This document shows, in pieces, positions 7,575 through 46,680 of a stretch of 64,000 bases of DNA (position 1 is the first letter of the stretch; every line of letters starts with the position of its first letter). Where the stretch lies: assembly GCA_004764695.1 (NCBI GenBank), contig SMSO01000032.1, forward strand, positions 5,178,483-5,242,482, read 5' to 3'. Origin of the DNA: Schizochytrium sp. TIO01. Its lineage: Eukaryota; Protista; Bigyra: Labyrinthulomycetes. Under the pieces are notes generated by a model. That model ran no database searches. It saw nothing but the letters and a program-made list of their open reading frames with translations, and was not told the DNA's origin. Both the position numbers and the translations under genes were made by a program.

Positions 7575-10117
7575 ATGCAATCTACTAAAAGCATCCTCTG
7601 GCTAACGGTGCTGGCAACTCTGACAGTCTTTACGAATGGCTGTTTAGAGTCAGGCGTTACATGCACGGGCAAGCTTATTAAAATCAAAGGTGCCACAACC
7701 ACTGTTTGTGGCGATTCAAGCGAATGCTCAACCATATGCTCAGAATATGAAGCATGTGTTGCATGGACTTACAATGTTAACAACAAGAAATGCTCCATCT
7801 ATTCAACACGCACTGGCACGAAAAAGAACTCTAAGTATTTAACCGGCGCTCGAGACTGCGCTGGAGATGCTGAAAGTAATACACCTGCACCTACGCTTGC
7901 GCCTACGCCCGAGCCAACGGAATGTGCATCTTGGAGCTATGGCCAGTTTATTGGGTCTGGTGACGAGTTCGTGCTGTCTGTGAAAGGTATTGCCGAGCCT
8001 GAAGACTGTGAAGCACTTTGCGCTGCAGAAACTGATTTTACTTGTGTGTGCTGGTCGCACCACCGCAATGGAGCATCCAAGAACAGAATTTGTGAGCTTT
8101 ATGAAAGTAGGCCTAAGTTCGTGCCACAGAAAATGTCTAGCAAGTGGACATCTGGTCCATTCGGCTGCCCTACTCCTGCTCCTACGCATTTCCCGACTAA
8201 TTTCCCGACTGTCCACCCGACTGCTTATCCGACGGATTACCCGACCGCCTTCCCAACTGCAGAGCCTACACAGTTTCCGACGGCCTTCCCAACTGCAGAG
8301 CCTACAGAATTTCCGACTGCCTTCCCAACTGCAGAGCCTACAGAATTTCCGACGGCCTTCCCAACTGCAGAGCCTACACAGTTTCCGACGGCCTTCCCAA
8401 CTGCAGAGCCTACAGAATTTCCGACGGCCTTCCCAACTGCAGAGCCTACACAGTTTCCGACGGCCTTCCCAACTGCAGAGCCTACAGAATTTCCGACGGC
8501 CTTCCCAACTGCAGAGCCTACACAGTTTCCGACGGCCTTCCCAACTGCAGAGCCTACACAGTTTCCGACGGCCTTCCCAACTGCAGAGCCTACACAGTTT
8601 CCGACGGCCTTCCCAACTGCAGAGCCTACAGAATTTCCGACGGCCTTCCCAACTGCAGAGCCTACAGAATTTCCGACTGCCTTCCCAACTGCAGAGCCTA
8701 CAGAATTTCCGACTGCCTTCCCAACTGCAGAGCCTACACAGTTTCCGACGGCCTTCCCAACTGCAGAGCCTACAGAATTTCCGACGGCCTTCCCAACTGC
8801 AGAGCCTACACAGTTTCCGACAGCCTTCCCAACTGCAGAGCCTACACAGTTTCCGACGGCCTTCCCAACTGCAGAGCCTACAGAATTTCCGACTGCCTTC
8901 CCAACTGCAGAGCCTACAGAATTTCCGACTGCCTTCCCAACTGCAGAGCCTACACAGTTTCCGACGGCCTTCCCAACTGCAGAGCCTACACAGTTTCCGA
9001 CGGCCTTCCCAACTGCAGAGCCTACACAGTTTCCGACGGCCTTCCCAACTCCAGACCCTACAGCATTTCCGACGGCCTTCCCAACTCCAGACCCTACAGC
9101 ATATCCCACTCTGTCTCCTGTTACAATTGAAGAATTGACTCCTGCTCCTACGCAAGCCCCGATTTACCAGTGCCCTGATCGAAAGCTTGATATCATGTGG
9201 ATCATGGACAACAGTCAATCAATTTCTACCACTGGATCACAGACGCTTCAATCACTACTCCCTCGCTTGGCTGAGGCTTACACTTTGTCTAGTGCCGATA
9301 CACGTTTTTCTGGGCTTGCCTACAGCACACAGATTAGTGGCGTCTCAACAACAATCAACAGTAGTTACCCCCTTGGATCAAACCCATTCAATTCGTAAGT
9401 TTACAAAACTCGAGACCAGCGCAACATCATTAGATACGTGCCAACGTGAAAAACATATGACTGAGAGGTGCAATAAACACCATACTAACTCTCTGCATCC
9501 GATGTAACGATTACAGTGAACAAAACATTTCGCCATTTAACTTTGCTATGGATCAATCTGTGAACACAAATGGAAAATGGGACGATTTTGGAGCTGCAAT
9601 GATTGCTAGTGGAAAAACTAACACCCCTCAAGCTTTGCAGGCCGCCAAGTATATCATGGGCCTCACGTATGATGAGGGAGGTCCACGAAGCGACGATGAT
9701 GAAATTATTAAGATCGTCATTCTTTTTACAGATGGCAACCCCAATCTTCGAACAGGCGTGACATGTGGTAACATCAATGATTCGACAAAAAATGCTGATA
9801 CATCCAAGTATTTCATGGCATGCACAGAATGGCTAGTATATGAGCTTATTACCGAATACAAAGTCTACTTTATCGACGTACAGATCGGTAGCGACATTGA
9901 CTCAAATTTTCTCAACTATTGCATAAATCTTCCCACTGCAAATGGTAGTCAGCCACTCCCAATCCAAAGCATCCAGGCTACTTTTGACAACATTCAAGAA
10001 ACAGTCGACCAAATCATTCAAGCAAGCTGCTTTAGCTCAAGCTACGCGGAACCCCAATCCGTATCTTTCAAATATACGAGTACAACTGAGTGTGCCAAGA
10101 AAATCACTGTGTCTTAA
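7575..10117 (+). CDS. Secreted PAN/Apple-PAN/Apple-PT-repeat stalk-vWA protein, paralog 1 (exons 7575-9394, 9517-10117; about 806 aa)
   Basis: Signal peptide MQSTKSILWLTVLATLTVFTNG; PAN-like C..C....C.(A/C)W......C..Y motifs twice; about 24 x 12-aa PT repeats; vWA with DIMWIMDNSQS (DxSxS), TNTP and IVILFTDG. Intron GTAAGT(9395)...TACTAAC(9483)...TTACAG(9516) joins the two ORFs in frame. Confidence 0.9.
8250..9113 (+). repeat. Coding 36-bp tandem repeat, about 24 units (PTAFPTAEPT[Q/E]F)
   Basis: Unit ttcccaactgcagagcctaca(cag/gaa)tttccgac(g/t)gcc; 22 AE-type units followed by 2 PD-type units. Confidence 0.97.
9395..9516 (+). other. Spliceosomal intron, phase 2 (paralog 1)
   Basis: GTAAGT donor, TACTAAC branch point, TACAG acceptor; splicing restores the frame. 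Confidence 0.9.
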
Positions 10118-18800: not shown

Positions 18801-19977
18801 ACGCACAACTTTGAACCCACCGAAGCCGTGATGGAGGGAACGTACTCGATTGTGAGTAAGCGCAGCAGCCGTCACCATTGCTTTCCTGCCTGAATTTCCT
18901 GCTTCAAGCAGACAGCGCCTACGTAGATAACACAAGACTAGGCCCGGTTTACTATCTTGCCGTGGCCAGAAAAGGCCTCCTCTGGTTTCCCGGCATGTGT
19001 TAATTAATAGCTCCATAGCTTTCTCTCTTGCTGGCACCATGTGAAAATGAAGTTGACTCCTTCGAGCGAACTTGATTCACTTTTTATTCACTTTAACCTT
19101 GGTGCACTCTTCTATGCTCATAAAAGCTGGTGGAAACGCCAGTAATGATGATGATGACTGCGTCGCTGTCACTCGCTCAAAGGCAGCGCGCGGCCTTTCG
19201 CATGGATGAGTGAACTAACTTATGCAAGGAATGGGAACCCCGCGTGTGCAGGCGAAGGCCCCGCGTACCCCTTATTTGGTAGGAGGGGGCACTGACCGCA
19301 CTTGTTCTTTGAAGTGAGAACTTCAGTCTGCATTCTACAGAAGTTTGGAATTACTCTGTTCTCCGCTTTTCCAACAAGTGCCGGGCCAATAAATATAAAT
19401 GAAGAGAACGAATGAACCTTGAAAGGTGAAGCTGATGGAGCACGATGGATGAAGCGCGTTACTGGTGCTTTCCAAGCATCCTCATGGACGAGGCAGCGAG
19501 CTCTTGAGAGGCGTTTGAGCTTGAAGACAAGCGGGCGGCGACTGTTGTGTTGATTCTCTTTTTTGGCACTTGAAATGAATGCAAGGCAAAGGCTCACTGT
19601 TCTGCGAAAAGATCGATTGCTATTTGGTTGTAAACAAAGAAAGAAGAGTGCTAGTGCACTACAGGCCAGCCACGGAGCCCCTTTTTTGCACAATTGTTGA
19701 ACGAAACCAACCATCGTGATGGACTTCCTGGACTCAACTTCGCAGTTAGTTTCACCTGGGTTTGGATTCATCCACAGGAGGCCTACCGAATGCGAGCCCA
19801 GGCCTGAGCAACTCGAAGGCGAACGAGGGAGGGGAAAGCTGCTCTTCGAAAGAAAGATAGAAAGAAAGAACTGATGATCGCTCAGGCCGTTCGATTGATA
19901 GGCACACTCAGTTGTCTGAAGCAAATGAAAGGCCAGCTTTGCTTAAGCTCAGGCAAATGGACAGGCATGAATCGACA

Positions 19978-20250
19978 ATGAACGAGTGAATGAATAAGTG
20001 AATGAATAATTGAATGAATAATTGAATGATTGAATGAGTGAATGAGTGAATGATTGAATGAGTGAATGAGTGAATGAGTAAATAATTGAATAATTGAATA
20101 ATTGAATAATTGAATAATTGAACAATTGAACAATTGAATAATTGAATAATTGAATAATTGAACAATTGAACAATTGAATAATTGAATAATTGAATAATTG
20201 AACAATTGAATAAATGAATGAATAAATGAATGAATAAATGAATGAATGAG
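19978..20250. repeat. Compound (TGAA)-derived microsatellite with TGAATAAT, TGAACAAT and TGAATGAG 8-mers
   Basis: Visible 4- and 8-bp periodicity. Confidence 0.93.
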
Positions 20251-21540: not shown

Positions 21541-21776
21541 ATTACATAGCTAGCTAGTAGGCGTAGGCATGCAGGTCCCTACTATAGCTTTCGTGGGAAA
21601 AACTTTGTTGCTCAAGGAAGGAAGTGGAGAGCCCATACAGGAGAGCTTCCTTCCAGGTTCGCCTTGTTAAGTGCTGGTTCACTAATGGCTCCTTCCTCTC
21701 CTCGAATCCCTCGAGTTGTACATGCAACAGAGCAGCCAAACTAGCCACGAGTGCCGCTGCATCTGCCCTGGTCTGT

Positions 21777-22035
21777 GTATGTATGTATGTATGTATGTAT
21801 GTAAGTATGTATGTACGTATGTATGTATGTATGTATGTATGTATGTATGTATCTATGTATGTATGTATGTATGTATGTATGTATGTATGTATGTATGTAT
21901 GTATGTATGTATGTATGTATGTATGTATGTATGTATGTATGTATGTATGTATGTATGTATGTATGTATGTATGTATGTATGTATGTATGTATGTATGTAT
22001 GTATGTATGTATGTATGTATGTATGTATGTATGTA
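21777..22035. repeat. (GTAT)n microsatellite, about 65 units
   Basis: Near-perfect tetranucleotide run. Confidence 0.97.
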
Positions 22036-22316: not shown

Positions 22317-25087
22317 CGCAGAGCTCTGCGATTTAGATTCAAGTCGGAGTAAATCTCAGACGAAGAATGGATATTCGAGCTAGCTAGCTAGAAACTTGGG
22401 TTCGGGGCAGGCTCTGAACGCGACGGGCCCAGCGAACCGAGGCTCGTGTCGCTGGTCTTCAGACAGTTAGTTTGCGAGCTGAGCTGAGCTGAGCTTTGCG
22501 GCGGCCTTGCGATCGATGCCTCGGGTCTCAAGTTGTCCTCTCCTCGTGCTGAGAAGGTACACGTTCTCGGCATGGCTCCTGAGATAGTAGATATTGCAGT
22601 CTGCAATGCGAAGGGCGACCTTCGTTTGGTCTCGCATGATGTGTATCGTTGGCCAGGCAGCTTTGTGGCGCGGTTCCTGAGGTTTTGCAGAAGAAGACAG
22701 ACCTCCTTCACATTCAGGGTCCAAATCTGTGGAGCAGCGGCTGGGAACGTCAGACAGGCAGAGAGAGAGAGAGAAAGAGCGAGAGCTGCGTGAATCGTGG
22801 CAAAATCTTGGCGCATCTTGAAAACAGCCCACCATTTCCTCAGACCCGCACGCCGAAGCATTCGCAAACCCGGTCCGCTAGGCAGCCAGCTGGCTGGACG
22901 TGGCCCGAGCAGCCTCGAGATCCCCCGCTTGCCGCAAACCTCTTCGCCATCGCCTCGAGATTGTCGCGGCCCTGCCCGCATTGTCAGCACTGGATCTCGA
23001 CGCTTCAAGTTCGACGGAAAGAATTTGAAAATTCAAATCAAATCAAATCGAAGCGAGCGTAGCAGAGCCGTAGCCAGTGCTAGGCAGGTAGCGCTGGCTA
23101 GCAATCTAGCTAGCGATCTAGCTGTAGCTAGATTGCGACGGATGCGCTGCGGTTCTCGCGTGTCGTTGCTTTTGCATGCGCTTCAGCTTCCCTCTGAGGA
23201 GGCAGAGCCGCGATTGCCTGCCAACGCGCTAGCGCGTGATAGCCTCGGCACTTTCCACGTCGAAGCCGGCCGCTGCGGTATGGAAAGCACTGGTTTGTTT
23301 CATCGTGAATCAGCCATGGATCAGCCACGATTAGCTAAGTTTTTCGGAAGAATGTATCGGTTTAAGTATTTATTTTCAAAAACTACTCATTTAAACCTGT
23401 TTTTAAGTTTCGAAATTAGAAGTGTTTTTTAATGCCTGTTGGGATCAAAAAAGAGTGGTTAGTAATGAGGATGGATGGAGCTTTCGCGTCGATTTCTTGA
23501 GTTTTGGCTGATTTGGCTCGATTATTGGAGGCCAAGGATGCGATATGCGCTCAACGGCGAGGCCAAAACGAGTACAATGCCATCATAGGGAACACCGCCA
23601 ATTTGCCGAGGTGTTTGTGCGCCGTGTTCTCTGTGCCAGGCTTAAAAGGGCTGCTTGTCACAGCGTAGTGTCGCCGCTCGCGAGGAAGTGGGTTTTTTCT
23701 GTGCTCGAATTTGAACTTCTTATTTATTGCACGCTCTGAAACAAATAGATATCTAAGATGCCTTCAATCGTTCAGCAAAGTCTGTCATTTAAAGCACCCT
23801 CCTTCTGTCGGCTATACGAATGGGCACGTTCGAGTAGACCCTTCGAACGCATTCGTTTCTTCTTTAGCCATTCTTTCGTGACGCGTTTGCGTCACAGAGG
23901 GGGGGCTCCGGTTCGCCTTTTTTAATGGCCCCCAATGCAACTTTGGCGATGCGGACTCATTCCGAGGCATTCAAGTACATTGTCTGTCGTGTTCAGGACA
24001 CGGAAAGTGGCCTTGTCCTTGTCCCTGTTAGTCTCTATTTTAAAATATATATAGATTATTATAAAAAAAAAAACAAAAAAAAACTTACGAAAACAAGAAC
24101 AAAATAAAAATGTGGAGAGAACTGGAGGAAAAGAGTCCGATGGACCCAGAGAAGGACAGGGAAGAGACCCGGAAAGGAGAGCGCTGAAGGGCCCACTCTT
24201 TTCCCCCTTTTCTTTCACGGGGCTGAACCGCCGAAACCTCTCAGAAAGTAAGCGCTGCATGTCGTTGCTTCTCTTCTTTCCTGGACCGGGAGATCGATCG
24301 TTGGTTGCCTGCCTACCTACCCATGTAGTAGGACTTTCTTAAAATCTTGCTTGATTATGCTCTAGAGGGCATTCATGTATTTCCTCACTTCCAAGCTTTC
24401 TGATTTTATTGTTAATGTTGATGTTGCTGTTGGTTTCTCAGAAGAACAAAGGTAAAACAGTATTTCCGGGGGGGAAGAGTCATAAGTAGATAGGTGTTAC
24501 CTTCCGTGAATGGACTCTCTTCTTCCCCTTCAAAAGTGGCATTCCCTGCACTCTCTTGAATATTCTTATGGATTCTCGATGTAGTAGTGCTTTATGATCC
24601 TGTATTAACTTCTCCCTATGCATATTAATATATGGTTTCGCTTTAATTAATTTTTTTAAAATAAAAAAGAAAAGGAAAGAAAAAAGAGCCATTACTTTGT
24701 TAAAGTGAAAAAGAAAAAGCTGCGGCTACACAGCTGTGACTTCTCACTTTCACCTTTCTTTTGGCTCGGGTCACCTTTATGGCTCTCATTTCGAGCTAAC
24801 ACCACCACAGAAGAAGTACCTAGTGCTAGGAGAGAGAGAAAGCAAGCCATCTGAAGATTGGAGTTTCTGAGGCAGTTAGGTCGAAGGGAAGGGCCACGCG
24901 TGCGAAAGCAAGGCCCGAGATCCTCTCCAACTGGCCGGCCTCAGACCATCCCAGAAGGCCCGTGTTCGGATCAGGCAGGCAGAAGACGCAATATTCTGCG
25001 TCTACTTCTGCCTTTATCCGAAAGAAGAAAAAGACAAAGAAAAGAAAAGAAAAGAAAAGAAAAGAAAAAACACGTACCGTACTACCT

Positions 25088-25118
<31 letters not shown>

Positions 25119-28100
25119 TTGAACTCTCTGAAGGTTTGTGGTTTAACTGAGCTGTTGAACATATTCCTTAATTGGCGCGAGTTTCAAGAACAATTGTAGC
25201 GAACTATGAGCGCCGAGGCAGCTGCTTGGCACCTGCACATCAAGGCTGGGTTGGACCTGGCTGGGGATTCGATATTCCAGGCCTCTTCGCCAACGCTTGC
25301 GAAGGAAAGGGCGCTCTTGCCTCGAAGGAGGTCGGTTTCCTTCCACTCAGACTCAGGGAGCGAATCATTGTTTCAGGTGCCGCAGTTCGTTTGTTGGATT
25401 CGAACTGAAAAAAATGTTTTTGAATCAAAACTCTTGTTTTCCCTCATTTTTTGACACTCGCCACGGATAATGGCCGCCGCTCGGTCGCTTGGCTCAGTGA
25501 ATGTAGAGCGAAACATATAGTAGCAAAGCAAAGGGAATTGATCGCCTCGAGCTCTGATGACAATATCTGGGAATGAGGCGACGTGTCGCCGGCAGTGAGT
25601 GCTAAGTTGAATGTCTTTGCGGCATGAAATTCATATCTCACTACCCTTTTTTCTTTTCTTTTTAAAAATAAATTAAACGAAAACATGCGCGAATGAATTC
25701 ATTAAAAAGGAGAACCTACCTATATTAGGTATGCCTTTGTTTGCGAACCCATAAGACTCATGTCCAAGTATTTGCACTTAATGATGGCGTGCGCGAAGAT
25801 GACAGTGTGAAGAGCAGTGTAGTTCCAGCACTAGAACTTACATAGTATTCATCGTTATGTCTTCTTCAGTTTTTTGTTTTTTTAATGAAAGGAAAGGATC
25901 AAAAATGGAGAAGAGTTATTTGGAAGACGCAATTTTATGGTGAGGTACGTATAGTGTTCCAACAGTTAATTTACTTTTCAAAAGAGTGCTAGGGACTGCA
26001 CAAGAGGAGACTGGATTCGAGGAGCCCATTTTTATTTGTTTCATTTAATTTAAAGAAATGATCCCATCGAGAGTAGTCGTGGTAGAGCATAGGAGTAGTA
26101 TGCATGCACTACCTAATAGCACGCGAGCAGTAATGGCTGTGGCAGTAAGCAACGTGCAGGGCACGTTATGGCTATTATATTGGACTTTTATCCGATTTGA
26201 ACTTGAAGAATGCAAAAGATCTGTTGACACCTGTTGTCTCTGGCTCGTTCTGGAGCAGTCTAATACTGTTTGCTCAATTTTCACTTACTCGCAGCTTAAA
26301 AAAGTTAATGCGGTGTTTGTTTGCTTGATTGTTTTGTTTGTCTGTTTCTTAGTTAATTTGGTGATTTCTTTCTGACTGTGACGAAGTGGTTTACGTGAAG
26401 TTCATCTCTTAAAATAGGTGCGCATAATATTAGGTGCAGACTTGGTGGGATCTTAAGATATATAGGTACATAGTAGGTACGGATTTGGTGGAACTCGTTA
26501 ACCCCTATATCTGAAAAGATTTCAAGAGAGCTATACTTTAATTTAGCGGCTCAAAGTCAGCAGATTAAGGAATGGCCGCCATAATATACCCATCCATATA
26601 CTGCTTTGGGGTATCATCGCGACGCTTGACGTTCGGATATTTGTTTTTTGTTTTTATTTTCCCAAAAGCTGCGTAGTGTGGTGAGTAAGTAATCGTCCTT
26701 CGAGGCAAAATGAAGACCGCCTGACCTTGCCCGGAATTGAATTGGTAACAGGAATCGATCGAGAATCAGGTCAATTAATTGCGCGACGCAAAGAGTGTAC
26801 AGACTGAGAGGTAAGCTTTACCCCCGCTGAACAGAGAGAGCCCAATCGCTACGATAGATAGTGTGGCAAACCGAAAGCTACGTCTTCCTGTAAGGCCGAT
26901 TCCTCGTCGATGTTCATTGTACGCTGTGAGGAGCGGAGAATAAGCAACAAATTGATAACTTTGTTTCTAAATTCTTCTGTGGATCATCACAAATGTAATT
27001 ATTTTTACAAAAAGTATTCCTTTAATTTTTAAAAAATTGTTTTTTGAATATTTGTTTGTTGCTGCGGATTTTTAATATGTTTAATTCAAATGACTCATTC
27101 GAATAAATAGGTGGTTTATTTATTGTAATAATTATTCATCCGTAGAATATTATCGATGAATTCGGACTTCAAATGGAGTGCGAAGTGCCATGAATCTCAC
27201 CCATCTCTGTGGCGGAGAGCCTGAGCTCGCTTGTGCAAGAACTTTGCATTGGCCTGTTCGTTCACGAACGTCGTCTCTACTCATCAGGGAGCGAAGGGGT
27301 TGACATGGAGAGCCTTCGTTCAGCTCGTCCCTCCCTCTCCCTCGCGCTTGCCCGTCAAGCGTGCAGGAGAAGGTAATCTGCGACTGCAAATTGCAAATCG
27401 TAGGAAAACGGAGAGAAAGAAAAGCTGGAAATGAGCGGAAACTTGAAGGCTGAAGAACACTCAGGGAGGCACGAAATGAGTTGGAGAGAAGCCGAGTCCT
27501 GTGGCCAATATTAAGCGTGCCTAGCTCTGAAGTTATGTGTTTGAGTCATGGAGTATGCGATCTAAGAGCCCTTGAATTAAGGTCGGTGGGTAGGGCTTTC
27601 TAAGTTTTATTTTTAAAAAAAGTGTTGGTGTTAGGTGTTTCTACTTTTATTTAGTATCATTATTATCATTAATATTTGTTATTTAGGTCAGGGACCTTCC
27701 GAAGGCACGATTGAAAGGCTCGAGTAAAGCAGAGCGAATGATTGGGGGGCTGTGCTCATTCCATGATTCAGGATGCGGACACGTGACATAATCTTCAAGT
27801 AGTCTACTAGCCACACGGTGCATCAAAGGTACTGAGGCAGCGCATTCGGTTCTTTCATTCAAAGTATATGACTTCTCTCTCTTTCTTTCCTGAGTATTGA
27901 ATTTTTACTTTAGAAGTACCTATAGGGTATCAATTTAAAAAAAATCTAAAATGATTTTTATGATGTTAATGATTTTGAGCATTGAGAGTGTGACAATGTG
28001 CCACAAAGGCCAGTTCCAAAACCGGAACAGGTTGGCTGGCGCAGACAGATCGAGATCAGTGCAAACCACCAACCTTCTGATTTGCAAAATCTCGAGACCA

Positions 28101-28168
28101 AATCAAAACCTTAACTCAAGTCAACTCAACTCGTCTCCCAAACATTGTCGTCTGGGACACATCACACC

Positions 28169-30221
28169 ATGACCTGGCGACTCTGGCTAGCTGTGCTGGC
28201 CACTATAGTGGCTTCAACTGTCGCGAAAAAGCCTACACCTGAACCGACCTCTTCACCGACAGAATGCACAGGCTGGAAATATGGTATATTCGCTGGTTCG
28301 GCCGTTGTCAAAGACACAGTAACTGTAAGCACTGTCGAGGAGTGCGCAGCGGCTTGTGATGCACAAACGAGCTTTGATTGCATTGGCTGGTCGTTTCATA
28401 CCGATGGCGAGTCTGGAAACCATGACTGTAAACTTTACTCCAAATACAATAAGTTTACTCCTCAGACCGAAAATAGCAAATGGATATCTGGCCCATTTGA
28501 ATGTACAGATGCGCCCACTCTCTCGCCCACCCCGTTGCCTACAACGCCTTCGCCGACGGAATGCACAGGCTGGAAATATGGTATATTCGCTGGTTCGGCC
28601 GTTGTCAAAAACACAGTAACTGTAAGCACTGTCGAGGAGTGCGCAGCGGCTTGTGATGCACAAACGAGCTTTGATTGCATTGGCTGGTCGTTTCATACCA
28701 ATGGCGAGTCGGGAAGCCATCAATGTAAACTTTACTCTCAATACAATAAGTTTGTTCCTCAGACCGAAAATAGCAAATGGATATCAGGTCCATTTGGTTG
28801 TTCAACTTCCGAGCCTACAGCCCATCCCACTCATGAGCCCACGCCTCAACCCACTCATGAGCCCACGCCTCAACCCACTCATGAGCCCACGCCTCAACCC
28901 ACTCATGAGCCCACGCCTCAACCTACTCATGAGCCCACGCCGGAGCCCACGCCCCAGCCTACGCCGGAGCCCACGCCCCAGCCTACGCCGGAGCCCACGC
29001 CCCAGCCTACACCGGAGCCCACGCCCCAGCCTACACCGGAGCCCACGCCCCAGCCTACGCCCCAGCCCACGCCGGAGCCCACGCCGGAGCCCACGCCCCA
29101 GCCTACACCGGAGCCCACGCCGCAGCCCACGCCAGAGCCCACCAACGAGCCTACGCCCCAGCCCACTGTCGAGACCACTATTGAAGAGCTTACACCTTCT
29201 CCTACGCCAATGCCGATCGCACAGTGTCCCGATCGCAAACTTGACATCGTTTGGGTAGTTGACAACAGCGGATCGATTGATGATAATGGTTCCAATGGCC
29301 CAACAGTTCTGAAAGAACTGATGTATCGCCTTACAGATGCCTACACACTCTCTCAAACCCAAACACGATTTGCTGGCCTTCGTTTTGCTAACACAATCAT
29401 AAACACAAAAACAACACCTACCGTTAACTACCCCCTGGGTAAGCCCGCATTCGGAACGTAAGTTAATCGAGCAACCTCACTTTAAAAAGGCTTGCTTCTT
29501 TGTAAACTCGTGATCATGAAATTAATTACACTGCTGAATATTATTGAAAGAGGTACTAACTGATAGATTCTGCACTTGTGCGCGTGCTTCAACGTTGAAA
29601 TTAATTTTAAAATACAGGACGAAGCCAGGTCGCCCCTTCAACTTCATAATGGATCAATCAACAAATGTCGATGCTGCTTGGGATGATTTCGCTGCCACCA
29701 TGAAAGCTGATTCAAACACAAACACGCCTGTAGCTTTGCAAGGAGCAAACTATATTCTTGGTCTCTCTGAAGAAGATGGTGGTCCACGTACTGCAGATGA
29801 AGATACCATTCGCATTCTGATTCTTTTTACAGATGGCAACCCGAACCGTTACAAGAACGCCTATTGTGGTGATAAGGGAACGTATACTGGCAGTGAATCA
29901 GGCCAAGCAACAAAGCCAATTCATTTGGCGTGCACAGAATACTGGGTTAAGGAGATCATCAATAACCATGATGTCTACGTCATCTTTGTGAAAATTGGCG
30001 CAAATATTGATGCTGACTTTCTCCAATACTGTATTGAGCTTCCCAGTAAGAATGGTGCCCAACCACTGCCAATTCAGACCGTCGAAGCAACATTCGAAGA
30101 TATTCAAGAAACGGTGGATTCTGTCATTGAGGCCAGTTGTATTGATGAAAGTTTCATGACTCCTCAGACTGTTGGATTTAAGTATGATGGGTCTGTAAAA
30201 CAATGTGCCAACAACATCTAA
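28169..30221 (+). CDS. Secreted PAN/Apple x2-PT stalk-vWA protein, paralog 2 (exons 28169-29457, 29618-30221; about 630 aa)
   Basis: Signal peptide [19 protein letters not shown]; two near-identical PAN-like domains; [16 protein letters not shown] stalk; vWA with [15 protein letters not shown] and ILILFTDG. Intron GTAAGT(29458)...TACTAAC(29554)...TACAG(29617) is in frame. Confidence 0.9.
28256..28800 (+). repeat. Direct internal duplication (297-bp spacing) of a PAN/Apple-like domain
   Basis: 28256-~28500 and 28553-~28797 are nearly identical at DNA level ([18 protein letters not shown]...SKWISGPF). Confidence 0.95.
28826..29165 (+). repeat. Coding 12/24-bp PT repeats ([16 protein letters not shown])
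   Basis: cccactcatgagcccacgcctcaa units followed by cctacgccggagcccacgccccag-type units. Confidence 0.93.
29458..29617 (+). other. Spliceosomal intron, phase 2 (paralog 2)
   Basis: GTAAGT/TACTAAC/TACAG at the same position as in the other paralogs. Confidence 0.85.
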
Positions 30222-33200: not shown

Positions 33201-35685
33201 TTGTTTCTGTAGCTAAGCATTGAAATAGCACAAACAAACTGAGGTCGATTTGATTGGTTGGTGGGCTTAGCAGTCAAATACGAAAGGAATCCTAACCGAG
33301 AACAAATAGGCACCACGAAGGTTCTGTTCTCGCTCCCTCCGGTGTGATAGCTGATTGGACTTTGACTTTAGTTTCTACCCACTTCGTCGATGAAGTAGCC
33401 TCTGACTATTGAGAGTGTTGTCCCCTCATTCGCCAATTGTCAATTCAGCACTTTCTGGTCCTACGTATTTTTTTTAATTTCCAATCTTTTAGAAACATGT
33501 CTTCTTCTTTTTTTCATTTCTTTATCTTATTCGTAAACTGTTATTTATAATCTGGTAGGGAACGGAGCCTTTCGGCAATTTGCATCATTTGAAGATTGTT
33601 GGTCAAACGAAGTGCCCAATGCTGACTTATTCGCAACCTATTATGGCACCGAGTGATTATGTAATCTTCAAGGGAGGGAAAATGAAGACACACTTCGTGT
33701 AAGGAAGCGGCTGGCATGTTCATCTATGTAGTAGTTTATAGATGCTGTGGCTTGTTGATAGAAATCGACTTGACCAGGAAACTGAAAAAGCGAGTACATT
33801 TAGATGAGACAGTTCCAGTTTTTTAGAGCGTGTCAAACGACTTTCTAAACCACTGGATTAGTGCAAAAGGCTCCAGAATCCATGTGCATAAAGAGGTAAA
33901 CAGAGAACTTGATCGAGGCTCGTTTTTTTTGTTGGATTGTTGAAAAGTTTTATTCCCGTTTACAAATCATGTTAGATCATATTTACTTGACTCTCAAAGC
34001 TGTAGATGTAAGGACGGGAGTTGTTCGGAAAATAGTATGCTTAATCTCTCTCTTTACGGAATAGAGTATCTTTCTATAGTATATTGTCTGTACTCCGAGG
34101 CTGCCCCTGAGTTTTATCAAAATAAATAAAACTTTCAGGACTTTATTATGGGGGTTAGCACCCTTCCTTTATGCTTGAGATTAAAAACAACAAAGTGGTG
34201 TACATGTTCATTTATTTATACTACAAGGATGCAAAAGTTTCCAGAGCCTGATCTGTACAGGAAAAGCGCTGTAGTTATATATACTTCTATGTTTTTTTAT
34301 TTGTCTTTTTTTTTTTTTCTCATTTTTTTCTTTCCTCTACTAGCTAGGTAGTTCTGGAATATGAATAGATTGTATTGGTAGAGAATTATGTTGGTTTTCT
34401 CGAGGCAGTGCTGGAGTTTTATTTTAAAATATAAAAAAAGTAGGCAGCGACAAAGAAGAAAGGGCAGTAGAAGTATTGCCCTGTTAACTAGCACATGGTT
34501 TCTTGGTTCCTAAAGGCCCAAATAAAAACTATGATAGTACACTTTCTCTCATACAATCTATGGAATTGACGTGCGGCACTTTTAGCTTCTGGCTAGTATA
34601 TTATAAGGTAGGTGTGCTGAGTAAGAGCCGACGGCCTGATTTGCCTTAGTGAAACAACCGTGCTGGAGCACAGCAGTTTATACTCAGCTTGTTTGTATCT
34701 ATACAGCTTGGCGATAAAACCATGAAAGTAGCCTACTTTATGGTGCTTTAGGTGTACATTCAAGCAACCACTGACCAATATGATCGCAGTCAGTGGCCAC
34801 CATTTCTCATTACTTATATATGGGAAAACTGAATACATAAAAGCAATTTTGAAGATATAGCTGCAAGTTTGAGGACACCAGAACCGCTATCCTTCTAGCT
34901 TCGAATGTGTGGAAGTGGCCTGGAAGCTTGCTTATCATACAAAAAGTTCGGCCAAGGGTGTTGGCCGTGGAATAGTTCCGCACCTTATTCCTCTAGAATA
35001 CATGCCTGTATTTCCCTGAATTCTACCAAAAACCCCTTGAGGACCCCTCTTGGAAAGGAATTATGAGAAGTATATGCAAGAGTCAGGGTGCGACTTTTTT
35101 GCTGTTCCGGATATACATCTTGAGTTCGAAATTAGAGTTATAGGCATAAGAAAAAGCCATACCTCCGACCGAGCATCGGTCTTGCGCGTGTGCAGATTTC
35201 AGAAGTCGATACGTACATAACGTCGCTGCTTTTAAAAGTTGCTAATAGGCCTGATTCTTTGTTTTAAAAGGCTCGAAGATGCATTCGATTCCACGGCCAG
35301 GTCTTTTGCTTTAGACCTGTTCATCGACTCTTAATGAATAGGCTTTAACTCCCTTCACATTGAACACTGAAGCATCTTGCTTGTTAGTAGGTAAATCTAG
35401 TATTAATAATTTACAGAATACAAGCTTTCTAGAGTAAGTGATTGCTGCGTTGCTGTGTTCAATTGTCTGGAAGATTTGGTGGGTAGTAAATATCAATGAT
35501 TGAGGTATATTTGCAGGGTAAATATTGCTTATTTTTAATTTTTAATTTAAATACAACTAGGGTAGTTACTACCTACCTGCTGATAGAATTTGAAATAAGA
35601 AAAAGGATGAATTCGTGAGAGTGAAAGTCAAGCCAAAGCAAAACCCAAACGCGAACAACTTCAAAATCTCAACCATTTGCAAACA

Positions 35686-37328
35686 ATGTATTCTGCTAAA
35701 AGTATACTCTACCTTATTGTGTTAGCAACCCTGGCAGCCTTTACGAATGCTTGTGTAGAATCAGGCGTTACATGTACAGGCAAGCTTATCAAGATTCACG
35801 GTGCATCAACTACAAGTTGTGGTGACTCAAGCGAATGCTCAGAGGTGTGCTCTGAATATGATGAATGTGTTGCGTGGACTTACAACGTCAACAGCAACAA
35901 ATGCTCCATCTATGCGACACGTACAGGTACTAAAAAGAACTCCAAGTATGTAACAGGCTCTCGCGACTGCGACGGAGAGACCACCAGCGAAGGTAACACC
36001 CCTGCTCCTACTTTGGCGCCTACAGCTGCGCCGACGGAATGTTCAACTTGGCAATACGGCATGTTTGTTGGGTCTGGTGATGAATTTATGCTATCCATTG
36101 GGGGTATTGCTGAGCCGGAGGACTGCGAAGCGCTTTGTGCTGCGGAAACGGACTTCGCTTGCGTGTGCTGGTCACACCATCGCAATGGAGCCTCCAAGAA
36201 CAGAATTTGCGAGCTTTATGAGACAAGACCCACATTTGTCGAACAGCCTCAATCAAGTAAGTGGACATCTGGCCCATTTGACTGCCCTACTGCAAGCCCG
36301 ACGATCGCACCCACAGATGCCCCAATTACAGTGGAGGAACTCACACCTGCCCCTACACCGGCCCCAATCTATCAATGCCTTGATAAACAACTTGATATTT
36401 TGTGGATACTTGATAATAGTTGGTCAATCGATCAAAATGAAGGAAATGGGTCGGCGGTTCTCCAGGATCTTCTCCCGCGCCTGGCCGATGCGTATAACCT
36501 TTCCCAAAGTGAGACACGTTTCTCTGGACTCGCTTATAGTACAAACATTAGAGGTGTGACATCGGCTGATGTCAATAGCTCCTACCCTCTTGACACAAAA
36601 CCTTTTGACAGGTAAGTTTAAAGAAACGTTATACACACATGCAAAGATTAACACAACGTGTATTTATCGATTAATTCTACGAACAACACGACACTAACAT
36701 TATTTGGATGATCATACCACCACACAGTACTTACGCTGTTTCGCCATTTAATTTTCAAATGAGCCAATCCACGAATGAAGGTGGGACATGGGACGCATTT
36801 GCGAGCAAAATGAAAGCCATGTCGACAACCAACACCCCTCTAGCATTGCAAGCCGCAAAGTATATCATGGGTCTTGATGAATCCGCGGGAGGGCCACGAC
36901 AAGATGAGGCTGTCAAGATTGTCATTCTTTTGACAGACGGCAGTCCCAACATGCGAGCCAAGACAGAATGCGGTGACATTCCTGCTGATGAAACATTAAA
37001 TTCGAAGATTGATCAGTTTGACATGGCCTGCACAGAGTGGCTAGTGTATGAGCTCATCAACAAGCTTGGTGTCTATTTCATCGATGTTCAAATCGGTGGT
37101 GATGTTGATGAAAACTTTCTCAATTACTGCATTTCTAATCCTGAATCAAACAATGGCCAACCCCTCCCACTGCAGACTATCAAGGCAACTTTTGAAAATA
37201 TTCAAGAGACAGTTGATAGTATTATCCAAGCAAGCTGCATTGACTCTAGTTTTAAGAGCCCCCAGAACATTGTCTTCAACTATGAAACCGCAAATTCCTG
37301 TGCTTCGGCAATTGAGAGCTTCTTTTGA
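35686..37328 (+). CDS. Secreted PAN/Apple x2-short PT linker-vWA protein, paralog 3 (exons 35686-36611, 36728-37328; about 508 aa)
   Basis: ATG at 35686, signal peptide MYSAKSILYLIVLATLAAFTNA; two PAN-like domains; vWA with DILWILDNSWS, TNTP and IVILLTDG. Intron GTAAGT(36612)...CACTAAC(36692)...CACAG(36727). Confidence 0.9.
36612..36727 (+). other. Spliceosomal intron, phase 2 (paralog 3)
   Basis: Canonical donor, branch point and acceptor; splicing restores the frame. Confidence 0.88.
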
Positions 37329-39687
37329 GTACTGATTCTGCTTTCCTAAACTAATTTGCTTTAGTCCAAAATTTGAACCACAAGAGTTTTCACTCTTTTC
37401 CTCTAGAGTTGACTGTTTTATTTCAGCCTATTCTTTCCAGCAAAAAACACATTTTTCAGGCTCATAGAAATCTTGCATAGTTTGGAAAGTGAACATCATT
37501 ATGCAAGCAATACTTGATGATAAGATAATAAAGGCAAAATACTGAAAGTTTTAAAAAGACTTCAGAGGGCATTCTAAATTTGCATTTTAGAGCTTGTGAT
37601 CTTCTTATCTGTGACAAGTTGGACTGATCAGATATCGTTGGGAGTTCTGTGACAGACTTAAGTTGTACTGTGCATTACTAAAAAGGTTAAGCTTAACATC
37701 TTTCCTTATCCATCACATCATATGAAACCTTCTCTTACAGATCTTCCTAAATATCTGGCGTACTATCAACACTCGAGTCCCTTGGTTTCACACCTCCGTA
37801 CGTATCTGATCATCTATATATGTACTATACATTTCATCTATACATTTTATATTATTTCCGAGTTGATGTCAGTATGTGTCAAGGAAAGTGGCAATGTCTT
37901 GTTCACACAGTTTTTGGACTGGTGATTATATTTTATGGTCATAAGCGTTGTCACCCCCCCCACACCCTCCCCCAAAAAATAAAAATAATCAAGGTACGCT
38001 TGAGACGATCTTAAGGCATTCTATTTTTGGTGATGAAGTGCGCTTCCAGTGATGTCGCTTCTAAAGTCAGTAGTGACTTATGCTTATGTTTAGCACCCAC
38101 ACTGAACATATTCATGAGGCATGGATACGGTCTATAATATGTTCACTCTCTATGTATAATCAAAATGATTTCCGAGGTTAGATACGAGGGCAACCAATCG
38201 CTAAGTTTTTTGTATATTTCGTTACGTTTCTCTTTTCCTGTAAGCTTTTTAGTAGTTATAAAGACTCTACTCCTCATCTTTTGAGGTTTGACCTCAAGCG
38301 TGACAAGTTCTGACCTGCAGTAGTGACGTAAAGTTGAGCATCTAAGACTCTGGTGATAAATACTACCGTGATAAATCCTTGTTTCAAGATCGCATGGATC
38401 GTTCTTTATTATTAAAAAAAGTATAACCTTGTACACTCAGAATTTTGAAGGTATCGGGGTTGTTTAAGGGCGACTTATTCAGAAGTGGGATCTTCAGGAA
38501 AGTGTTAATATTTGGAAATACATTTAATCCGCCACCGCAGAAAATATTTCAAGCTGTACTATGATAGCTTCAGTCCCACGGACTGATACGTAACTTGGCT
38601 ACTTTCCATCTTGTAAAGATCCACCGCATTCAAAAATTCTTACCTAAACGTCCGCATAATGTATTCCCTGGTCTGAGTTTCTATAGAGCTTCCGGCGTAC
38701 CGAGCAGTAAATACAGAGTAATCAGCAATTGAAGATATCTTATGGCGTGAATTCAGGAGAAAAATAAGAGCAATCAATTAATAAATATATAACAAATTAA
38801 GCTTTGTTACCATGCCGCAGTTCACTACGATGCTTTATGTTGCTGGCACTACTGACAGAAATAAATGAAGGCACTGAATTCATTCAAAGCAAAATGTGTA
38901 ATGAAGCACATAATCATGCATCACACACACACTACGAGACGAGCTAAGCTGGTTGAGATCTTACGTCGTGGGTGCAGAACTTTGTGAAGTGCTGGTCGAG
39001 GTAAGCCGCGCCCGGACAGAAATAAACTGTGGGATGCCTCTCCTGATCGATCACCCCGGCGAGGATTCTATTACTCTACATAATTTAGAAACAAATGATC
39101 ATCTTGGCAATGATCTCACATAATAAAAATTATGCTGTAGCTTTTCGACAGCTCATAGGGGAAAGCTAGTACTAGCCTAATAAGCGAATAAAAGTGTGTA
39201 TTACCAATAAGTGAACAGTACCAATCCAGGTTACGACATACAGATATGAGTTTTCATCAAAGTAAAAAGGCATTCTCAGTAGAAAGAGGTACCGAGTTAA
39301 CACCATTTAGCTTGAGCAAAATAAAAAACTCAAGCCAAAACAATCACTCAATTCTGGTAAAGGGGTTGATAGGATCACCTAGGTACTTACCTACCATCTT
39401 TGAATACTGAGAGAGGGAACCTACGAATACCATGTCAGAGGGCCACAATGGAACCCTGACAATAATTTAGTTTGAAACAGGGAAATGGCGACAAGATGAA
39501 CATGTGAATCAACCAGAAACTACTTTTCTTTTTATTTAAATGCAATTTATAAATAATAAAAAGATAGGCAGCAAAAACACTCCATCATTTAGACACACTG
39601 GCTCTTCCTTTTCATTCTTATATTATTAATTTTAAAATTATATGAAGATAATATTAGGTACTATTAAATGCTAGCATAGAAATAGAC

Positions 39688-39790
<103 letters not shown>

Positions 39791-44706: not shown

Positions 44707-44811
44707 CAAGCGCAAGCGACTCTAAGGATTTGCATCGACGAGAGCATTGTGCAATTCTGGCTCAACTAAAGAAGTTTATTGCTCTTACGGTTTTACAGTG
44801 GATTGTAAACC

Positions 44812-46680
44812 ATGCAATCTACTAAAAGCATGCTCTGGCTAGCAGTTCTGGCAACTCTGGCAGTCTTTACGAATGGTTGCGCAGAGTCAGGTGTTACATG
44901 CACGGGCAAGCTCATCAAGATCAAAGGTGCCACGACCACGGTTTGTGGCGATCCAAGCGAATGCTCAGCTGTGTGCTCTGAATACGATGAATGTGTTGCA
45001 TGGACTTACAACGTCAACAACAACAAATGCTCCATCTATGCGACACGTACAAGCACCAAGAAGAACTCCAAGTATGTAACAGGCTCTCGCGACTGCGACG
45101 GAGAGACCACTAGCGAAGGTAACACCCCTGCTCCTACTTTGGCGCCTACACCTGAGCCGACAGAATGTTCAACTTGGCGATATGGCATGTTTGTTGGGTC
45201 TGGAGATGTATTTATGCTATCCAAGGGGGGTGTTGCCGAGCCGGAGGACTGCGAAGCGCTTTGTGCTGCGGAAACGGACTTTAAATGTGTTTGCTGGTCG
45301 CACCACCGCAACGGAGCATCCAAGAACAGAATTTGCGAGCTTTACAAGACCCGACCCAAATTTGTTGAGCAGCCTCAATCGAGCAAGTGGACATCTGGCC
45401 CGTTTGCCTGCCCCACTGCTAACCCCACTGCTAAGCCAACTTCCTACCCGACAGACGCTCCAACACGCTCCCCTACTCCGGAACCTACTGCCTTCCCGAC
45501 AGACGCTCCAACACGCTCCCCTACTCCGGAACCTACTGCCTTCCCGACAGACGCTCCAACACGCTCCCCTACTCCGGAACCTACTGCCTTCCCGACAGAT
45601 GCTCCAACACCCTTCCCTACTCCGGAACCTACTGCCTTCCCGACAGTCGCTCCCACTGATGCTCCAATCACAGTTGAAGAGTTGACACCTGCTCCTACTT
45701 CAGCTCCAATCTATCAGTGCACTGGGCGAGAGCTTGACATTATGTGGATTATGGACAACAGCGCTTCCATCGATCAAAATAGTGGAAAGGGATCGGCGGT
45801 TCTTCAGGAACTTCTGCCTCGTCTGGCCGATGCTTACACGCTCTCAAATGCAAAGACACGTTTTGCCGGGCTCGCGTACAGTACAAAAATTCGTGGCGTT
45901 TCATCAGCTATTAGCAGTACTAAACCCGTTGGTACGAGCCCATTCAATTCGTAAGTTTTCAAAGATTCTAATCCGGCAGAAGGTTGTTTGTTTCTGCGGC
46001 CTAAAGTGGAAATGTATATACTGAAAAGTTATACGCTACGCGAATACCATACTGACTTTTTCATTCGAATGTGATGTAATAACTACAGGGAATCAGCTAT
46101 TTCACCATTTAACTTTGCGATGGACCAGTCTCTGAACACGGGTGGAAAATGGGACGCCTTTGCAGCTGCAATGACTGGAAATGGAAACACTAACACCCCA
46201 CAAGCTTTGCAGGCCGCAAACTACATAATGGGTCTTAGCTCTGCGAATGGAGGCCCTCGCAGCAGTGCTATTAAGATTGTGATTCTCTTTACAGATGGTA
46301 ACCCCAACATGCGAGCATACACATCTTGTGGTGACATCCCAACAGATGATAGTTCTAATACAGTTTCAGATATGAAAGACATGGCATGCACGGAATGGCT
46401 AGTATATCAGCTCATCAACAACAATGATGTCTACTTCATCAACGTGCAGATTGGTAAGGACATCAAGGCTAAATTTCTCCAATACTGCCTGGATCTTCCC
46501 GCTGTGAATGGTAACCAACCACTCCCGATTCAAACCATCAAGGCTACCTTCGACAATATCCAAGACACAGTCGACAATATCATCCAAGCTAGTTGCATTG
46601 ACTCGACGTTTGCAACACCTCAGGACGTAACTTTCAAGTACACAACTGCAAATACTTGCGCCAACCAAAATACTCTTTAA
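44812..46680 (+). CDS. Secreted PAN/Apple x2-PT stalk-vWA protein, paralog 4 (exons 44812-45950, 46089-46680; about 576 aa)
   Basis: Signal peptide; two PAN-like domains; about 4 x 16-aa PTDAPTRSPTPEPTAF repeats; vWA with DIMWIMDNSAS, TNTP and IVILFTDG. Intron GTAAGT(45951)...TACTGAC(46050)...TACAG(46088). Confidence 0.9.
45448..45645 (+). repeat. Coding 48-bp tandem repeat, about 4 units
   Basis: Unit ccgacagacgctccaacacgctcccctactccggaacctactgccttc. Confidence 0.93.
45951..46088 (+). other. Spliceosomal intron, phase 2 (paralog 4)
   Basis: Canonical signals; splicing restores the frame to ATG 46120. Confidence 0.9.

Follow-up and report, generated by a model that had tools for sequence, protein, structure and literature searches.

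Four co-oriented genes for putative secreted, two-headed PAN/Apple-vWA adhesion or matrix proteins in Schizochytrium sp. TIO01

Thraustochytrids are abundant as decomposers in the sea and are used in industry to produce DHA, and to our knowledge the molecules of their attachment, and of the ectoplasmic net that is specific to the labyrinthulomycetes, are essentially unknown. A stretch of 64,000 nucleotides of Schizochytrium sp. TIO01 (contig SMSO01000032.1, positions 5,178,483 to 5,242,482 of the forward strand; hereafter the window) contains a group of related genes that combine PAN/Apple with vWA domains. This raises the question of whether these genes code for adhesion or matrix proteins of this kind. 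So far a single proteomic list of candidates is available (PMC12221091), and it includes just one MIC4-like protein.

Exactly four copies (g1 to g4) were located in the window by tblastn, all co-oriented on the plus strand, and the junctions read from the sequence give each of them two exons and one intron: g1 at 7575-9394 and 9517-10117, g2 at 28166-29457 and 29618-30221, g3 at 35686-36611 and 36728-37328, and g4 at 44812-45950 and 46089-46680. In each protein a signal peptide precedes a pair of PAN/Apple domains, after which a Pro/Thr linker (30 to 334 aa) leads to the vWA domain at the C-terminus. The first exon of g1, delimited by its translation, its Pfam matches and a donor GT at 9395, carries the signal peptide, PAN-A, PAN-B, the linker and also the initial third of the vWA domain, where the DNSQS loop of the MIDAS lies. 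The second codes for the remaining vWA (MIDAS Thr in TNTP, MIDAS Asp in TDG), with a Cys-bounded variable loop at approximately 9764-9823, and for a C-terminal extension that lacks a hydrophobic tail. The same division applies to g3 and g4 (signal peptide, PAN-A, PAN-B, linker and N-terminal part of the vWA in exon 1, C-terminal part in exon 2) and to g2, where exon 1 instead contains two B-type PAN/Apple domains and exon 2 the C-terminal two thirds of the vWA.

The introns of g1 (9395-9516), g2 (29458-29617), g3 (36612-36727) and g4 (45951-46088) measure 122, 160, 116 and 138 nt, respectively. All are in phase 2 with GTAAGT..YAG borders (CAG in g1), contain a CTAAC/CTGAC branch-like motif and split the vWA domain at a homologous codon in all four genes. 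Splicing is confirmed for g2 and g3. The g3 intron is missing from spliced contigs of three public studies (runs X1, X5 and X10), the contig joint at 36607>36724 being equivalent, within a 4-nt ambiguity, to 36611|36728; the 1689-nt X1 contig spans 35642-37439, so that the transcript ends 111 nt past the stop codon and has no further exon. The g2 junction (...FGT|TKPGRPFNF) occurs in two natural proteins, P0002 and P0006, the latter also being consistent with the start codon and N-terminus of the g2 model, and the g2 transcript protein originates from an MMETSP/JGI Aurantiochytrium limacinum data set. The g1 and g4 introns are predicted from sequence reading, that of g1 at a position homologous to the confirmed g3 intron. 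The first-pass annotation, which had described four co-oriented paralogs each hidden as two ORFs joined by one intron, is thus borne out in its copy number, orientation and splicing. Its guess that the DNA came from a labyrinthulomycete was also right, as the g2 transcript protein is from A. limacinum and the sole foreign relative from Hondaea fermentalgiana. Transcript-like contigs were recovered in several unrelated culture data sets and are of a kind that cannot rank expression.

These observations bear on the view that the loci are duplicates in decay or wrongly modelled, each consisting of two ORFs that are unrelated or non-functional. The vWA halves do individually fall below the Pfam cut-off (exon 1 matching profile positions 1-49, exon 2 positions 72-154), but they are colinear, and the whole domain in the spliced natural protein P0002 scores 29.2 bits against Pfam VWA (PF00092; cut-off 23.8) and has a vWA fold. 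Together with the spliced transcripts, a reading frame kept in all five loci (the four window genes and a fifth paralog described below) and dN/dS ratios of 0.1-0.3, this refutes that view, which retains a negligible probability.

The two PAN domains claimed for each protein were confirmed by Pfam PAN_1 (PF00024), which matches two stretches in each of g1 to g4 with 28.0, 46.8, 32.3 and 29.7 bits, respectively, against a cut-off of 21.4; g1, g3 and g4 combine one A-type with one B-type domain, and the pair in g2 has to be corrected to two B-type domains. The latter pair is the product of a recent tandem duplication, visible as a 297-nt unit in 1.8 copies with 94% identity at 28251-28796 (TRF). 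Exactly six Cys residues with Apple-like spacing are present in the g2 PAN-B copies, seven in PAN-B of g1, g3 and g4 and eight in PAN-A, so that the six-Cys Apple framework, with a putative disulfide pairing, can be recognised. A PDB profile search with the PAN region matches MIC4 and SML-2. The AF2 model of the PAN pair is of low confidence (mean pLDDT 51, with PAN-B at approximately 70-76), and Foldseek with this model returns only PAN/Apple structures as top matches (best E 9.5e-4), among them MIC4 apple 1-2, factor XI, prekallikrein and SML-2. The PDB titles describe SML-2 as galactose-binding and MIC4 as an adhesin.

The Pro/Thr linker that follows is the most variable in length, with 334 aa in g1, 141 aa in g2, 30 aa in g3 and 102 aa in g4. 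The Pfam PT repeat exceeds its cut-off in g1, g2 and g4 and is undetected in g3 in the same scan. A stalk in each gene, as first described, therefore holds for the three long linkers, while that of g3 amounts to merely 30 aa or so. TRF identified a minisatellite with a 36-nt unit (12 aa) in 23.8 copies and 95% matches in g1 (8241-9098, plus strand), 24/48-nt units in g2 (28821-29166, plus strand) and a 48-nt unit in 4.5 copies in g4 (45439-45653, plus strand), the repeat units being unlike between the paralogs.

The C-terminal domain is a vWA with an intact DxSxS/T/D MIDAS, as had been proposed. DNSxS, the leading T of TNTP and the D of TDG, which make up the MIDAS, do not vary among the five members in this genome. 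They align with the MIDAS of PTMP1 and ITIH4 and have counterparts (DxSxS, T and D) in the Hondaea protein. The MIDAS is thus complete, and metal binding is predicted. An AF2 model of the vWA of P0002 (pTM 0.75), which includes a disordered insert of 57 residues, gave 67 Foldseek matches at E<=0.001. Among the matches listed, all are structures containing VWA or I domains, with PTMP1, ITIH1, factor B, MIC2 and the integrin alpha-X I domain at E about 1e-5. VIA-align superposes approximately 150 residues on CMG2, collagen VI, the alpha-M I domain and TRAP (Z 12-12.8, rmsd 2.6-3.0 A), and the model has the Rossmann-like alpha/beta fold of vWA domains.

The sole hydrophobic segment of g1 to g4 is the signal peptide: no TM helix, GPI signal or hydrophobic tail was found in these proteins, which end within about 25 aa of the vWA domain. 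This bears out the original description of secreted proteins without a membrane anchor, and the g3 transcript leaves no room for an additional tail. The family proteins are only putatively soluble, and because the Cys count is odd (21) in g1, g3 and g4, covalent oligomers or wall linkage are possible.

Comparison of the paralogs gave dN/dS values of 0.09-0.33 with dS near saturation, indicating purifying selection on the domains, with conservation strongest in the PAN heads (dN/dS 0.11). The Cys-bounded loop directly after the MIDAS Asp differs, with pN of 0.34-0.64 versus 0.19-0.29 elsewhere in exon 2, and its pN is about equal to pS for g1 to g4. Between g3 and g4, PAN dS is 0.43 and vWA dS exceeds 1.7, a contrast that suggests a mosaic or gene-conversion history of the heads.

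The description as a four-gene family stands for the window, but not for the genome, where the family is a branch of a larger set. A fifth member on another contig has the stalk and split vWA of the window genes but a different Cys-rich head, for which there is a weak VWD lead (Atlas score 0.81) and no Pfam match. Beyond the window, at least 20 more loci combine PAN and vWA; 21 of the 44 genomic VWA matches have a PAN match within 3 kb on the same strand, and PAN(-PAN) lies upstream of a C-terminal vWA in nine other loci. Examples of these uncharacterised PAN(-PAN)-vWA genes are G000:C31:3.327-3.359 Mb, C3:2.295 Mb and C13:0.116 Mb. They resemble the window genes in having a signal peptide (L015 and L016), PAN domains upstream of a terminal vWA and short PT linkers, and in lacking a TM helix. 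Both groups have a Cys immediately ahead of beta1, a loop past the MIDAS Asp that is bounded by Cys and, towards the C-terminus, an II(S/Q)xxC(I/D)D motif. The hhalign comparison of the two vWA groups gives 98.7% (E 2.7e-16). The other genes differ, however, in a further N-terminal region (all three fully scanned ORFs) and in a single-exon vWA that scores 57-72 bits against Pfam VWA versus 29 bits in the window family. The latter alone has an insert of approximately 25 aa with the intron, a longer hypervariable loop, a C-terminal extension of about 25 aa with an extra Cys and, except in g3, a long stalk between PAN-B and the vWA. The window family is a divergent offshoot of a large, lineage-specific PAN+vWA expansion. 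Outside the species, a search among 1.84 billion representatives found only one partial protein of H. fermentalgiana, labelled 'Integrin alpha-X, partial', an annotation by similarity.

The component domains are well-known adhesive modules, and it is the PAN+vWA family and its expansion that are undescribed. No characterised family with a PAN-PAN-stalk-vWA architecture was found, and no paper found describes this one, in agreement with the first-pass annotation, which had not recognised it. The same two modules occur in the apicomplexan proteins TRAP/MIC2 and MIC4/SML-2, with PDB sequence and fold matches to MIC4, SML-2, MIC2 and TRAP, and TRAP likewise has an intact MIDAS. In Apicomplexa, however, the vWA and Apple modules are on separate proteins, whereas they are joined here, and the TSR repeats, TM helix and acidic tail with a Trp near its end of TRAP/MIC2 are all missing from the window family (none of the exons matches TSP_1 at E<=1), so that membership of that family was rejected. 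CBEL of Phytophthora parasitica is a secreted stramenopile wall glycoprotein with CBM1 and two PAN/Apple domains and no anchor, reportedly plays a role in wall deposition and is also implicated in substrate adhesion. It has cellulose-binding CBM1 modules and neither a vWA nor a long PT stalk, and a CBEL-type lectin was rejected as no CBM_1 match occurs in the g1 to g4 exons (Pfam). The mussel byssus protein PTMP1, a secreted marine matrix protein with MIDAS vWA binding units, ranks first among both the PDB sequence matches and the Foldseek matches of the window vWA, at only about 15-20% identity, but contains two tandem vWA domains and neither PAN nor stalk. Fungal Als/Epa/Flo adhesins present a single binding head on a Ser/Thr/Pro-rich, glycosylated stalk of variable repeat length and have a C-terminal GPI/wall anchor; in the window family the C-terminus is instead a second head without a GPI signal. 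Integrin alpha subunits (no FG-GAP match and no TM, only an I-domain-like vWA) and gel-forming mucins (no VWD, C8 or TIL match in the four window genes; Pfam) were also rejected. A0A6S8AHQ2, the published MIC4-like candidate for the ectoplasmic net (PMC12221091), is distinct from the window family, and the accessible portion of the A. limacinum settlement proteomics supplements of that study contains no VWA or PAN annotation.

Taken together, g1 to g4 are paralogs, presumably all expressed and with transcripts for g2 and g3, that probably (at about 0.6) code for secreted, anchor-less, two-headed adhesion or matrix glycoproteins. The PAN pair would form a head with lectin-like or protein-binding activity, as in MIC4, SML-2 and CBEL, and the vWA MIDAS would hold a divalent cation from seawater and bind an acidic ligand residue, as in integrin I domains, TRAP/MIC2, CMG2 and PTMP1, with the fast-evolving loop past the MIDAS Asp tuning the ligand specificity of each paralog. 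An O-glycosylated PT stalk may serve as a stiff spacer whose length sets the reach. Having no anchor, the protein could bridge two extracellular partners, a wall or scale glycan on one side and substrate, matrix or another cell on the other; alternatively, one head may hold it on the cell's own wall while the other is presented. A role as a soluble cross-linker of the ectoplasmic net, as first suggested, would be plausible.

Three other roles were weighed. The proteins may have a structural role in the wall or scales, as glycoproteins in the form of HRGP/extensin-like Pro/Thr rods capped by globular domains, which would build or cross-link the scale wall of the cell itself rather than adhere to foreign surfaces. 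The long rods with independently expanded minisatellites, the missing anchor, the odd Cys that could give intermolecular disulfides in three paralogs and the precedent of CBEL as an oomycete PAN wall protein would fit, but g3 is nearly rodless while both its heads are under purifying selection, and an intact MIDAS beside a diversifying loop suggests ligand recognition over a purely structural role, making this reading unlikely. Rod and heads also recall the Chlamydomonas agglutinins, which are head-shaft-hook HRGPs, and a function in cell-cell recognition, as gamete or zoospore agglutinins or in self/non-self discrimination, could draw its specificity from the heads and from the paralog-specific loop at the binding face, with pN near pS, and would accommodate the mosaic history of the heads. 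It is nonetheless quite improbable, since the contigs from unrelated cultures give no sign of stage or mating restriction and the sequence appears, on a first comparison, near-identical across many strain-labelled runs, against strong allelic diversity. Equally doubtful are lectins for capture or defence, whose PAN end would bind bacteria, viruses, prey or detritus and whose vWA end would link to a cellular receptor; the SML-2 and MIC4 precedents, the large, quickly duplicating repertoire and the variable loop are compatible with such a role, but the strong conservation of the PAN heads is unlike typical arms-race recognition domains.

The preferred reading, of two-headed adhesion or matrix proteins, has a more speculative extension, in which a thraustochytrid-specific extracellular 'glue' is secreted when the cells settle, perhaps along the ectoplasmic net, with the PAN end bound to the cell's own scale or wall glycans, the MIDAS end to substrates or neighbours, stalk length setting the spacing and the loop diversifying ligands across approximately 25 genes, the vWA/Apple combination having been assembled independently in a free-living stramenopile. 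This fuller scenario is rather unlikely as a whole, although somewhat less so than a structural wall role. The locus and the at least 20 related loci provide a candidate set of adhesion or matrix proteins in a genetically tractable species. Two modules best known from apicomplexan invasion adhesins are here joined on single secreted proteins of a free-living stramenopile, with a stalk of evolvable length and a variable loop at the predicted metal-dependent binding face. Elsewhere in the genome, one gene (L018) encodes a TM-anchored vWA+PAN protein with an acidic tail that has a Trp near its end, as in TRAP/MIC2.

Eight long open reading frames (ORFs) on the + strand of the window are paired into four paralogous loci, g1 (7575-9394 and 9517-10117), g2 (28166-29457 and 29618-30221), g3 (35686-36611 and 36728-37328) and g4 (44812-45950 and 46089-46680), and no further copies or fragments were found in the window when it was searched with each exon by tblastn. 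All four translations are laid out alike: a signal peptide, hydrophobic and N-terminal, precedes two Cys-rich domains, and these are followed by a region of Pro/Thr repeats and the start of a vWA domain. The first ORF of each locus includes a segment opening with C-P-D-R-K-L-D-I-x-W-x-x-D-N-S-x-S-I and is ended by an in-frame stop within GTAAGT, while the second, 120-160 nt downstream, encodes a conserved PFNF-x-MDQS, followed by TNTP and then L(F/L)TDG(N/S)PN. The junctions read from the sequence delimit + strand introns at 9395-9516 (g1), 29458-29617 (g2), 36612-36727 (g3) and 45951-46088 (g4). All four take the form GTAAGT..YAG, lie in phase 2 and contain a CTAAC/CTGAC branch-like motif, and exon 2 begins 31 nt 5' of the MDQS/MSQS codons in every gene. 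From the exon lengths, the predicted products of g1 to g4 are calculated to be 806, 631, 508 and 576 aa, respectively.

The one-intron splicing predicted in the first-pass annotation was corroborated for both g3 and g2. The g3 sequence is near-identical in public sequencing runs, and contigs from four runs of four studies were placed on window positions 35400-37700. A single joint is observed over this gene, in three runs (X1, X5 and X10), where 116 nt with GT..AG borders are skipped at 36607>36724, which given a 4-nt ambiguity is equivalent to the predicted 36611|36728. One X1 contig of 1689 nt covers 35642-37439 with the intron as its sole gap, so that the g3 mRNA extends from ~44 nt 5' of the ATG to 111 nt 3' of the stop codon and includes no extra exon able to supply an anchor. 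The g2 junction is carried by two natural database proteins, P0002 (283 aa, JGI), which represents the entire g2 vWA domain, and P0006 (499 aa), a MMETSP0961 peptide which runs from the predicted Met of g2 to its predicted stop. MMETSP0958-0961 is Aurantiochytrium limacinum ATCC MYA-1381; the taxon id in the record, 87120, belongs to a fungus, whereas that of A. limacinum is 87102, and the former is probably a misprint. These two proteins served as the full-length and whole-domain queries in the searches below, and the spliced models of the four genes were searched exon by exon.

The Pfam PAN_1 model exceeds its cut-off in two stretches of each of the four genes, and in the PDB a profile built from the PAN pairs of g1 to g4 matches the apple domains of Toxoplasma gondii MIC4 and Sarcocystis SML-2 (E 0.002-0.005). 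AF2 modelled the PAN pair poorly (pLDDT 51; ~70-76 for the second PAN), and the best Foldseek matches of this model are all PAN/Apple structures. In g1, g3 and g4 the first PAN is of an A type with eight Cys and the second of a B type with seven, while in g2 the A-type PAN is replaced and two B-type PANs, each with the classic six Cys, are present. The latter pair forms a tandem duplication (window 28251-28796) with a 297-nt unit and 94% identity between the copies. P0006 shows one PAN where the genomic sequence of g2 has two, which may be ascribed to the collapse of these 297-nt, 94% identical copies during short-read assembly or to a strain difference. The B-type PANs of g1, g3 and g4 contain a C-V-C motif (8048-8053, 36159-36164 and 45285-45290, respectively), with one Cys more than in g2. 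The mature proteins of these three genes contain an odd total of 21 Cys, leaving room for intermolecular disulfides, and the extra Cys could represent either a free thiol or such a bond.

Exon 1 matches positions 1-49 of the Pfam VWA model and exon 2 positions 72-154, and the spliced natural protein P0002 exceeds the cut-off of this model (29.2 vs 23.8 bits). The AF2 model of P0002 (pLDDT 65.7, pTM 0.75), which includes a disordered insert around the splice position (residues 60-116), matches only structures containing vWA/I domains among the hits listed by Foldseek and VIA-align. These include PTMP1, ITIH1, factor B, MIC2 and the alpha-X I domain in the former (E ~1e-5), and CMG2, collagen VI, the alpha-M I domain and TRAP in the latter (Z 12-12.8, rmsd 2.6-3.0 A over ~150 residues). 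The residues of the metal site (MIDAS) are invariant across all members and are aligned by HMMER with DxSxS and (L)TDG in PTMP1 and with GGT...LTDG in ITIH4. The initial assignment of a PAN pair, a Pro/Thr stalk and a MIDAS-bearing vWA domain is upheld. Secretion without a transmembrane (TM) segment or other anchor, which had likewise been proposed, also stands, as the signal peptide is the sole hydrophobic 19-mer in the four proteins and their C-termini are polar.

The stalks differ markedly among the paralogs. The Pfam PT repeat is strongly matched in g1 (260 bits), and the stretch separating the final PAN Cys from the vWA Cys nearest to it measures 334, 141, 30 and 102 aa in g1 to g4, respectively. 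The underlying minisatellites have a unit of their own in each gene, of 36 nt in g1 (x23.8), of 24/48 nt in g2 and of 48 nt in g4 (x4.5), with almost no repeat in g3, so the stalks expanded independently. The four genes are old duplicates maintained by selection, with dN/dS values of 0.09-0.33 in every domain and dS mostly at least 0.9. At the nucleotide level the loci resemble one another only where they code for protein, and flanking DNA was rejected as part of the duplication unit. The PAN heads of g3 (35686-36300) and g4 (44812-45430) share 86% DNA identity and are much younger (dS 0.43), whereas the vWA domains of the same two genes are saturated (dS >1.7) and the closest relative of the g4 vWA is that of g1. 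Such a pattern is consistent with gene conversion or with g4 being a mosaic. After the MIDAS Asp, the loop enclosed by the next two Cys evolves faster than the remainder of exon 2 (pN 0.34-0.64 vs 0.19-0.29), and in this loop pN approximates pS among the four genes.

The description of a four-gene family proved too narrow, as a fifth member of the vWA subtype is encoded on another contig of the same genome and 21 VWA matches of this genome lie within 3 kb of a PAN. The fifth member, L006 (G000:C13:4816000-4825999, with an ORF at 2612-5887 and exon 2 at 6006-6641; 45% identity), has the same split vWA, preceded by a stalk of ~370 aa of PT(D/N)A repeats. Its Cys-rich head of ~600 aa is unlike those of g1 to g4 and has no Pfam match; within it, a C-W-G-D-P-Y motif recalls the GDPH with which VWD domains start, and only a weak VWD lead was obtained in the Atlas (0.81). 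The stalk and vWA, found here behind another head, thus act as a cassette with varied heads.

Across the 64 Mb assembly (37 contigs), PAN_1 matches number at least 89 and VWA matches at least 44, and 21 of the 44 listed VWA matches have a PAN nearby, on the same strand and no more than 3 kb away. These 21 fall in two orders, with the PAN or PAN pair upstream of the vWA in nine other loci and the vWA first in eleven matches. They are found at G000:C31:3327000-3366000 and ~20 other places, many of them in tandem clusters. Among the ORFs scanned from five of these loci, one encodes a signal peptide-PAN-PT-PAN-vWA protein and three encode an additional N-terminal region followed by PAN-PAN-vWA; among these three, an N-terminal signal peptide is found in L016 only, the ORFs called for L017 and L019 having none. 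In all four PAN-first ORFs the vWA is C-terminal, encoded in a single exon and without a TM segment. The vWA-first order is exemplified by L018 (G000:C31:7985000-7990000, ORF 1460-4180, minus strand). This protein of 907 aa has its vWA at the N-terminus, together with two PANs, a TM segment around residue 807 and an acidic tail that ends in FTEPSEWN-SKR. This membrane-anchored layout is similar to that of TRAP/MIC2, here in a free-living stramenopile. In a profile-profile comparison, the vWA of the g1 to g4 family matches that of the PAN-PAN-vWA group over 199 columns (98.7% probability, E 2.7e-16), and the two have in common a Cys before beta1, a loop enclosed by Cys that follows the MIDAS Asp, and a C-terminal II-x-x-x-C-(I/D)-D motif. 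These features indicate that the four paralogs form a divergent sub-branch of the PAN and vWA set of this genome, set apart by the insert that bears the intron, by a loop of greater length, by an extended C-terminus and by the long stalk that separates the second PAN from the vWA.

A profile of the five exon-2 pieces returned five matches among 1.84 billion representatives, four of which are pieces from the genome itself or from Hondaea; the fifth is a multi-vWA protein of generic type (2132 aa). The only foreign vWA relative found is a fragment from the thraustochytrid Hondaea fermentalgiana (GBG35314.1), named 'Integrin alpha-X, partial' through annotation by similarity, in accordance with the labyrinthulomycete host guessed in the first-pass annotation. 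Word-based protein searches yielded no match for g3 exon 1 and P0002 alone for the vWA region of P0006, the output for the PAN-first sister protein L015 was dominated by PT-repeat hits, and a scan of metagenome contigs recovered no relative. In the ESM Atlas, a query with P0006 yielded generic VWA clusters alone (0.76-0.80), none of which joins PAN and VWA. The literature search found no paper linking Aurantiochytrium with von Willebrand and no description of a PAN and vWA family in labyrinthulomycetes. The paralogs are modular, adhesin-like PAN/vWA proteins that, within these searches, are lineage-restricted and undescribed. In a settlement proteomics study, a secreted protein similar to MIC4 was put forward as an adhesin of the ectoplasmic net (PMC12221091). 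This candidate, A0A6S8AHQ2, was rejected as one of the four paralogs as its N-terminal sequence differs, and the accessible portion of the supplements to that study contains no VWA or PAN annotation.

The four proteins, secreted by means of a signal peptide and anchor-less, are under selection, and g2 and g3 are expressed. PAN/Apple domains bind glycans or proteins, vWA domains with a MIDAS coordinate an acidic ligand side chain via Mg2+ or Mn2+, which are abundant in seawater, and PT-rich repeats form extended, O-glycosylated spacers. By analogy, the simplest mechanism would be that of a bivalent extracellular bridge, with one head attached to a glycan, possibly on the scale wall of the cell itself, while a protein or surface ligand is bound by the other. 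The length of the stalk (30-334 aa) would set the reach, and fine specificity would derive from the variable loop that lies next to the MIDAS and is bounded by a disulfide. By analogy only, this loop would correspond to the specificity-determining loop of integrin beta I domains. The proteins may act as soluble cross-linkers, as wall-retained 'lollipops' or as covalent wall components. The rivals to such a bridge are a structural wall protein, a role in cell-cell recognition, and particle capture or defence. As adhesin-like proteins, the four paralogs and their relatives provide a concrete candidate set for the study of thraustochytrid attachment and matrix biology.

The flanks of the window contain ordinary genes, coding for an LCM methyltransferase, an MFS transporter, a NIF phosphatase and an RFC subunit. 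A functional link between the paralogs and the genes in their spacers was considered and dropped, the spacer ORFs scanned (~12.6-33.3 kb) being without an informative Pfam match; a weak RRP7-like piece occurs at 24858-25196. The spacers also contain long simple repeats, namely (TGTA)65, an AATG-rich 24-mer array and (TAA)34, at 21776-22035, 19977-20249 and 39688-39789. Upstream of the cluster, a minus-strand ORF (2357-2839) has a below-threshold match to an SBSPON-like C-terminal domain (22.9 vs 27 bits) and may represent a piece of another extracellular protein.
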